A stretch of 61,765 nucleotides of DNA, filler included, from Isurus oxyrinchus (lineage: Eukaryota), in NCBI GenBank assembly GCA_026770705.1. It is 3 parts of 3 records of this genome, joined end to end, with 100 filler letters (N's around TTAATTAATTAA, not from the genome) between each part and the next. Parts side by side here need not be neighbours in the genome. Positions count along the whole stretch, not along the records: positions 1 to 25,436 come from JANJGN010000242.1; 2 more parts are not named here. One strand, given 5' to 3'. The translations under genes were made by a program, and so were the position numbers. The notes under the pieces are model-generated. The model made no database searches. It worked only from the letters and a program-made list of their open reading frames with translations, and was not told where the DNA came from. Every line of letters starts with the position of its first letter. Within the stretch, counting starts at the first letter, position 1. Of this stretch, positions 7,330 through 7,858 are shown piece by piece.

Positions 7330-7667
7330 CGGCAGTGACAGTCTACACCATCCCGGATCCGTCTTCATAAGCATCTTTCGAAATGGTGATCCCACATCTG
7401 TATCTGTACTGAGCTTTACAGTAATAGGTGGCGGTGTCTTCAACTCTCAAATCTTGAATTTCCAGCGAAAATATCTTTTCTGCTTTATTCACCGACACAA
7501 CAAATCTCCCTCCGCTGGAGATCCGCTCCCACTCTGGGTTTGTCTGAAGAAATGGCCCTTCTCTAAACTATGAGAATTACCATAGAAAACGCAGGTGATG
7601 GTGAGAGACTGACACTCCTTCCTGGTCACCGCTGCCGGGATCTGTGTCACTGAGTGACTGAAAGAAC
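7330..7667 (-). pseudogene. Germline-joined NAR-TCR V(D)J exon (pseudogene)
   Basis: SFSHSVTQIPAAVTRKECQSLTITCVFYGNSHSLEKGHFFRQTQ [10-nt deletion vs paralog, frameshift] EWERISSGGRFVVSVNKAEKIFSLEIQDLRVEDTATYYCKAQYRYRCGITISKDAYEDGSGMV*TVTA, then donor GTAAGT. No RSS between V and J. Confidence 0.88.
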
Positions 7668-7814
7668 CTGGAAATTAAACAGAGAGAGTTTAATGGACCA
7701 TCAAAGCCGAACCACAGAACGGGATTAAAACCCCAGACAGTGTCTGTAATTAGGATGGAATCGGGCAGCTTTACATACACTCACACAGTGTCGGTTTGTT
7801 TGATCAGTACTCAC

Positions 7815-7858
7815 GGGATAAAGAGACAGACAGGGTGAAAATAAAGGAGTATTCTTAT
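7815..7858 (-). pseudogene. Defective leader exon of the joined NAR-TCR gene
   Basis: Paralog of 13094-13136 with ATG changed to ATA and a 1-nt insertion. Donor GTGAGT and upstream TATA retained. Confidence 0.8.

Follow-up and report, generated by a model that had tools for sequence, protein, structure and literature searches.

The joined gene and its split paralogue

The DNA analyzed here (the window, 61,765 nt including filler) comes from the genome assembly GCA_026770705.1 of the shark Isurus oxyrinchus and consists of three parts of three records, the first of which, JANJGN010000242.1, provides positions 1 to 25,436. On the minus strand of this part, positions 7858-7330 hold a complete gene for a NAR-type variable (V) domain, the type that is found in NAR-TCR, the doubly rearranging δ chain of the shark T-cell receptor (TCR). 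In this gene, V, an insert of 17 nt with the size of a diversity (D) segment plus non-templated (N) additions, and a joining (J) segment lie together in one exon. We consider it quite probable that the gene is a NAR-TCR V cassette with an inherited fusion of V, D and J, that it belongs to a locus of the TCR α/δ type, and that it was most likely joined by RAG in the germ line; it is now a pseudogene.

When the minus strand is read directly, framework region (FR) 3 (…EDTATYYCKAQYRY) is continuous with RCGITISKDAYE, followed by DGSGMV*TVTA and then by the sequence GTAAGT, and the V-J junction is in frame with both FR3 and FR4. In a scan of the whole piece for recombination signal sequences (RSS), no pair of heptamer and nonamer was detected between the V and the J of the joined unit. 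Direct reading and the scan thus confirm what an earlier, sequence-only reading had claimed, i.e., that V runs in frame and without an RSS into the third complementarity-determining region (CDR3) and J.

A split paralogue located upstream (Table 1) serves as the reference, and canonical RSS are found in it at positions matching the fusion in the joined gene. The two units are 82% identical in the 100 nt upstream (13137-13236 in the paralogue), 79% in the leader exon, 90% in the leader intron, 89.5% in V at the DNA level, 75% in J, which was aligned part by part, and 71% both in the 100 nt past the J donor and in ~1.2 kb of the downstream intron (5277-6511 vs. 9580-10916). The sole large difference is a segment of ~0.8 kb, which is missing from the joined copy and which holds four RSS, the D segment and the spacers in the paralogue. 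The V exon and the leader intron (7400-7814 vs. 12661-13093) are ~90% identical, and the promoter, the leader exon, J and the flanks 71-82%; this pattern suggests that the V region may have been homogenized by gene conversion among NAR-TCR cassettes.

The extent of the homology bears on the possibility that the joined gene is a retrocopy, or that it resulted from gene conversion by a reverse-transcribed rearranged transcript. For the joined V of marsupial TCRμ, retrotransposition is the most likely origin (PMC7615758). In the present case, however, the homology spans the promoter, the leader intron, V, J, the J flank and the downstream intron, which argues that the joined gene is not a retrocopy. 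The 147-nt leader intron, the promoter, the J donor, the J flank and the downstream intron are all in place, no poly(A) tract or target-site duplications were seen around the joined unit on reading the sequence, and conversion by a copy of an unspliced pre-mRNA would require extra assumptions. An origin through reverse transcription is therefore extremely unlikely. The earlier statements that the leader intron and the 3' flank of J are retained and match the paralogue (90 and 71% identity, respectively), and that the gene is not a retrocopy, hold.

Table 1. Features of the joined NAR-type gene, of its split paralogue and of the supporting V exon (window coordinates).
Feature	Position	Strand	Remarks
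TATA-like box (CATATAAA)	7890..7883	-	~25 nt upstream of leader; kept in split paralogue
Leader exon, joined gene	7858..7815	-	44 nt
Leader intron, joined gene	7814..7668	-	147 nt; GT..AG intact
V(D)J exon, joined gene	7667..7330	-	single exon, 338 nt
NAR-type V part of fused exon	7667..7400	-	last V-homologous base 7400
Interval from V end to expected J start	7399..7383	-	17 nt; about one D in length
J part of fused exon	7382..7330	-	DGSGMV*TVTA; phase 1 at end; homology to paralogue J detectable from 7369
GTAAGT splice donor after J	7329..7324	-	flank homologous to that of paralogue J
Intron from J to supporting V exon	7323..4619	-	5277-6511 alignable to 9580-10916, downstream of split paralogue
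Split paralogue (reference)	13136..11817	-	5 kb upstream of joined gene; all reading frames open
Paralogue leader	13136..13094	-	43 nt; ATG present
Paralogue V	12945..12658	-	open
Paralogue V-RSS	12657..12620	-	spacer 22
Paralogue 12-RSS/D/12-RSS	12292..12222	-	12-RSS 12292..12265 and 12249..12222
Paralogue D	~12264..12250	-	15 nt; sole D in cassette
Paralogue J-RSS23	11908..11870	-	RSS scan
Paralogue J	11869..11817	-	53 nt; open; followed by GTAAGT donor
Supporting V exon	4618..4313	-	leaderless V-set, TCR α/δ-like; 2.7 kb downstream of J donor
Two 23-spacer RSS after supporting V	4312..4215	-	59 nt apart, in tandem

Disabling lesions

The joined copy is a pseudogene. Its start codon has changed from ATG to ATA (7858..7856), its leader exon is longer than that of the paralogue by one nucleotide (44 vs. 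43 nt), a deletion of 10 nt near 7537/7536 shifts the frame in FR2, and a TAG codon is present in FR4 (7345..7343) where the paralogue has GTG. A further gap of 6 nt in CDR1 of the joined V keeps the frame. All three lesions named earlier, i.e., the loss of the ATG, the 10-nt deletion and the TAG in FR4, are present, and the additional nucleotide in the leader exon has been added to them. The accompanying claim that the joined domain decayed later stands in part: the lesions can be read directly, and their order relative to the joining is a matter of interpretation. The joined gene may have been functional once and have decayed afterwards, with function being lost later or perhaps already at the joining. 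The ratio of non-synonymous to synonymous substitution rates (dN/dS) between the joined V and the paralogue V is 0.26 in the frameworks (seven synonymous and seven non-synonymous changes). This value suggests that V was constrained for much of its divergence or was homogenized with functional V genes, and is no proof that the joined form was ever expressed.

The joined form in sequencing runs

Sequencing runs were sampled for words of the window. The runs of I. oxyrinchus itself, all of one sample that is possibly the source of the assembly, contain 67-77% of the sampled words; in 16 runs of a second organism, which belong to five studies, the share is 16-19%. One run of the former and three of the latter were placed on positions 7200-13199 by means of Logan contigs, which show presence only. 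Second-species contigs on the intergenic positions 7744-9253 and 9261-11023, with ~3-6% other letters, show that a close relative has been sequenced as genomic DNA.

In the second-species run X13, an entire contig of 178 nt aligns without gaps on 7331-7508, with 20 mismatches, and includes 109 nt of V in addition to CDR3 and J. Its depth is 5.5, and that of single-copy neighbors 8.5-10.6. When V of the unrearranged paralogue with its RSS was forced onto the same positions, 63 mismatches were counted, of which the 69 nt beyond V account for 56. The difference between 20 and 63 mismatches identifies the X13 contig as a joined gene with a CDR3 of equal length. Furthermore, in contigs of X13 and X20, which belong to two different studies, the end of V aligns best with the paralogue (12660) and is followed, after one letter, by 7398, from where the match continues for 38-49 nt through CDR3 into J. 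Thus, joined V-CDR3-J is present in contigs of a second species, one of them at about single-copy depth, and the joint is therefore inherited rather than somatic.

Alternatively, the assembly could have caught a V(D)J unit that had been rearranged somatically in a T-cell clone, the germline at this position being split. Blood or lymphoid tissue is a common source of shark DNA, and the own-species runs come from one sample only. However, neither assembled contigs at such depth nor the occurrence of the same CDR3 in a second species could be explained by a somatic clone, whereas joined V-CDR3-J of equal CDR3 length was found in the second species in two studies. In addition, an assembler retains the majority form, and the four or more lesions and the divergence of 10-29% from the paralogue indicate an old locus of its own. 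A somatic clone is thus very unlikely, and the earlier proposal that the gene is joined in the germline is supported by the second-species contigs.

In contigs of X13 and X20 (7351/11833 and 7398/12660), this CDR3 occurs together with a V end and a 3' part of J that are closer to the split paralogue. They may represent another joined copy, with a junction that is longer by 2 nt and perhaps without the TAG. Another contig, which was found in both species (runs X1, X5 and X20; 12066-12769), contains the V end at 12658 and the sequence between D and J from 12209 downward, the two being separated by 50 unaligned letters. It skips 448 nt, corresponding to the V-RSS, the V-D spacer and the 5' RSS of D, and its depth is above single copy; in size, it agrees with a NAR-TCR copy at another genomic location that is partly joined (VD-J).

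A word-index protein search with the stop-free sense open reading frame (ORF) 7346-7567 gave four matches, one of them named from Chiloscyllium punctatum; all were unrearranged NAR-type V segments reading into an RSS, and no joined relative was among them. The antisense ORF 7316-7570, which covers the J flank, CDR3 and V, gave no match in this search, and the 24-nt CDR3 word had no exact match in JGI metagenome contigs.

Assignment to NAR-TCR

The V domain is of the Pfam family V-set. The best matches of the paralogue V in the PDB are VNARs (E values of 7e-17 to 1e-11), with residues 6-91 aligned (86 residues) and a difference in length of two residues; the PDB contains no NAR-TCR V for comparison. 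NAR-TCR combines an extra, rearranging NAR V with a canonical TCR-δ V-C (PMC12227049). A corresponding second V exon, the supporting V, lies downstream of the joined gene (Table 1). The acceptor at 4620-4619 opens this exon, the first two bases of which complete the open codon of J (G + AT), and a scan of up to 780 nt upstream of it detected no credible leader, whilst the leader of the paralogue was recovered as a control. The NAR-TCR supporting V is said to have been described as lacking a leader by Criscitiello et al. in 2006. The exon matches TCR δ and α chains as well as VH chains, and it is dead, with a TAA at 4478..4476 and Cys23 replaced by Tyr.

Since the V is nearest to VNAR structures in the PDB, the gene could belong to a V cluster of the antibody IgNAR instead. 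IgNAR clusters, however, contain three D segments (PMC4279169), against one in the split paralogue. Moreover, what follows J here is not a set of constant (C) exons but an intron and then a V exon that lacks a leader and has its own RSS, and the neighbors are TCR α/δ-like V pseudogenes. An IgNAR origin is accordingly hardly plausible. The single D, the J donor and the in-phase leaderless V exon with a 23-RSS, together with the likeness of V to VNAR, support the assignment to NAR-TCR, as was proposed at the outset.

Several other features of the supporting V and of its surroundings were noted. The supporting V (4313-4618) has a Cys in CDR1 (…SGLCQY…). The RSS that adjoins it (4312..4274) has a weakened nonamer (ACAAAATGA, 6/9), and the distal copy (4253..4215) has the perfect consensus CACAGTG-23-ACAAAAACC. 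Three decayed TCR α/δ-like V fragments with stops or frameshifts are found at 18093-18542 (-; …AVYFCAMSAR), 19263-19638 (-; …TNCIYSTS…) and 2093-2203 (+; …SEIYYCVLNIHK); the last of these is inverted and is most like the supporting V. Two NAR cassettes are located upstream of one supporting V, which is itself dead. A supporting V for the split paralogue is absent between 7950 and 11800, as judged by tblastn and blastn; the intron homology of the two NAR units ends at 9580, and nothing V-like is present at 7950-9580. Very high-copy repeats occur at 8200-8400 and 10400-10600, as indicated by read depth and loose ends, and the ORFs 570-911 (-), 24365-24688 (-) and 23772-24182 (+) resemble fragments of retrotransposon reverse transcriptases. 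The piece contains an assembly gap (N) at 19677-19850.

The V-J junction and the origin of the fusion

From the last V-homologous base (7400) to the donor, the joined exon comprises 70 nt. Subtraction of a J of 53 nt leaves 17 nt, compared with 15 nt for the D of the paralogue. The joined V is ~4 nt shorter than the coding end of the paralogue V, and J is about full length. At the junction, these sizes fit V plus one D plus J, with little trimming or addition. Overall, the deletion extends from approximately the border of the V heptamer to approximately the coding start of J, with a D-sized insert, the frame kept and all four RSS gone, which matches the outcome of RAG recombination.

On this basis, the following course of events may be envisaged. 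The ancestral cassette would have been split (leader, V with RSS23, D between two 12-RSS, J preceded by a 23-RSS, and donor), like the paralogue 5 kb upstream. In a cell of the germ line, recombination by RAG would have removed the ~0.8 kb with the four RSS. Its product would have been a single in-frame exon in which V, trimmed by ~4 nt, is connected to the full-length J through 17 nt of D/N length, whilst the promoter, the leader, the leader intron, the donor and intron after J, and the supporting V exon with its RSS would have been left untouched. The resulting unit would have specified a TCR-δ chain with a fixed NAR domain in the membrane-distal position and a second V still in need of rearrangement. 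Function would then have been lost through the changes in the start codon, the leader frame, the FR2 frame and FR4, and in the supporting V through the stop codon and the loss of Cys23.

The interval from V to J could also have been deleted without RAG, i.e., by replication slippage, by end joining after a random break or by unequal recombination. The joint, in which neither palindromic (P) nucleotides nor another signature of RAG was found, would be compatible with such an event. Against this stand the position of the deletion, with one end within ~4 nt of the V heptamer and the other near the coding start of J, the D-sized insert and the preserved frame; moreover, a random loss of 0.8 kb would rarely take all four RSS and nothing else. 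A RAG-free deletion is thus unlikely. The earlier claim that RAG acted in the germline is consistent with the position and the size of the deletion, from which both RAG as the agent and the germ cell as the place are deduced; the diagnostic P nucleotides were not found.

Several other points weigh against an inherited, RAG-made NAR-TCR fusion. At the junction, besides the missing P palindrome, the D of the paralogue is not recognizable in the 17 nt: the local score of 4 was equaled by 1759 of 2000 shuffles. The window offers only this one D for comparison. The match of CDR3 to D segments that had been suggested as a check was run against it alone and, with a score at chance level, leaves the agreement in length. 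Divergence of D is to be expected, given that the J segments of the two units share only 75% identity. With respect to the sequencing runs, they are of unspecified tissue and their type was guessed as DNA, those of I. oxyrinchus represent a single sample, no listed own-species piece spans the junction, and no RNA run turned up among the runs holding words of the window. The X13 contig is 89% identical, against ~96% in the flanks, and may derive from a paralogous joined copy rather than from the orthologue. Finally, C-δ, D-δ and J-δ are not in the piece, and the assignment to TCR-δ rests on the architecture and the nearby V pseudogenes.

Comparison with known germline-joined receptors

It is accepted that the fused immunoglobulin (Ig) genes of sharks arose through joining by RAG in germ cells; among these genes, split paralogues occur together with joined ones, and the leader introns have been preserved (Lee et al. 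2000, PMC2193156; PMC4279169). The joined gene described here resembles these genes, i.e., the fused VJ light chains and the VDJ of IgM1gj, in that the V(D)J fusion is inherited, the leader intron and the flanks are kept, and split paralogues lie alongside (PMC2193156, PMC4279169). It differs from them in being a TCR V cassette that splices onto a second, rearranging V, whereas the Ig genes are antibody clusters with C exons next to them. Furthermore, several of the Ig examples are expressed, whereas the present copy is dead.

With NAR-TCR (Criscitiello et al. 2006, as cited in PMC12227049 and PMC7615758), the gene shares a V of the NAR type that has its own leader, a single D, a J donor and a dedicated leaderless supporting V with RSS downstream, a comparison made via reviews. 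However, the V domains described for NAR-TCR are assembled somatically, whereas here the germline already contains the membrane-distal V in assembled form.

Two other TCR genes are known to be germline-joined. In 2023, marsupial TCRμ was given as the only known case (PMC7615758). Its chain also has three domains with one V, Vμ-j, germline-joined, but there the membrane-proximal V is joined and thought to be retrotransposed, whereas in the shark gene it is the distal V that is joined, with the leader intron kept. The lack of a leader intron, the mark of a processed origin in Vμ-j, does not apply to the shark gene, in which the intron is present at 7814..7668. In 2025, the newt Pleurodeles waltl was reported to express a pre-joined V-J from its TRD locus (PMC12698447). 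Like the shark gene, this V-J is a fixed germline rearrangement in a TCR-δ locus. However, it is a V-J only, has no leader of its own, involves a conventional δ V, and is expressed and abundant in the repertoire, whereas the shark gene encodes an extra domain of the NAR type, has a D-sized insert and is dead.

Full-text literature searches yielded no report of a germline-joined NAR-TCR, in agreement with the initial impression that none had been described; most subscription papers were outside their coverage, and an earlier mention is possible. As far as could be found in the searchable literature, no TCR locus of a shark had provided such a case before.

Implications for shark TCR genes

Given the germline-joined Ig genes of sharks, the phenomenon is expected in these animals, and the present copy is non-functional. 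As a dead copy, it has small direct functional weight, but it serves as a marker for the possible existence of intact joined NAR-TCR genes. Tentatively, a small inherited subfamily of VDJ- and VD-J-joined NAR-TCR V genes may be present in at least two shark species, with at least one member possibly intact. We think this less probable than not by a wide measure, and the idea is prompted by the second-species contigs that join a paralogue-like V end and 3' part of J to this CDR3, and by the contig of both species with V, 50 letters and D-J sequence. If such a subfamily does exist, an intact copy would provide a γδ TCR with an invariant NAR domain, i.e., an innate-like, RAG-independent distal binding site, and would have a parallel in IgM1gj, a neonatal antibody.

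A joined NAR-TCR V with its intron would extend the germline activity of RAG in cartilaginous fish from the Ig clusters to the TCR-δ locus. It would also be the shark counterpart to the pre-joined V of TCRμ, on the opposite, distal domain.
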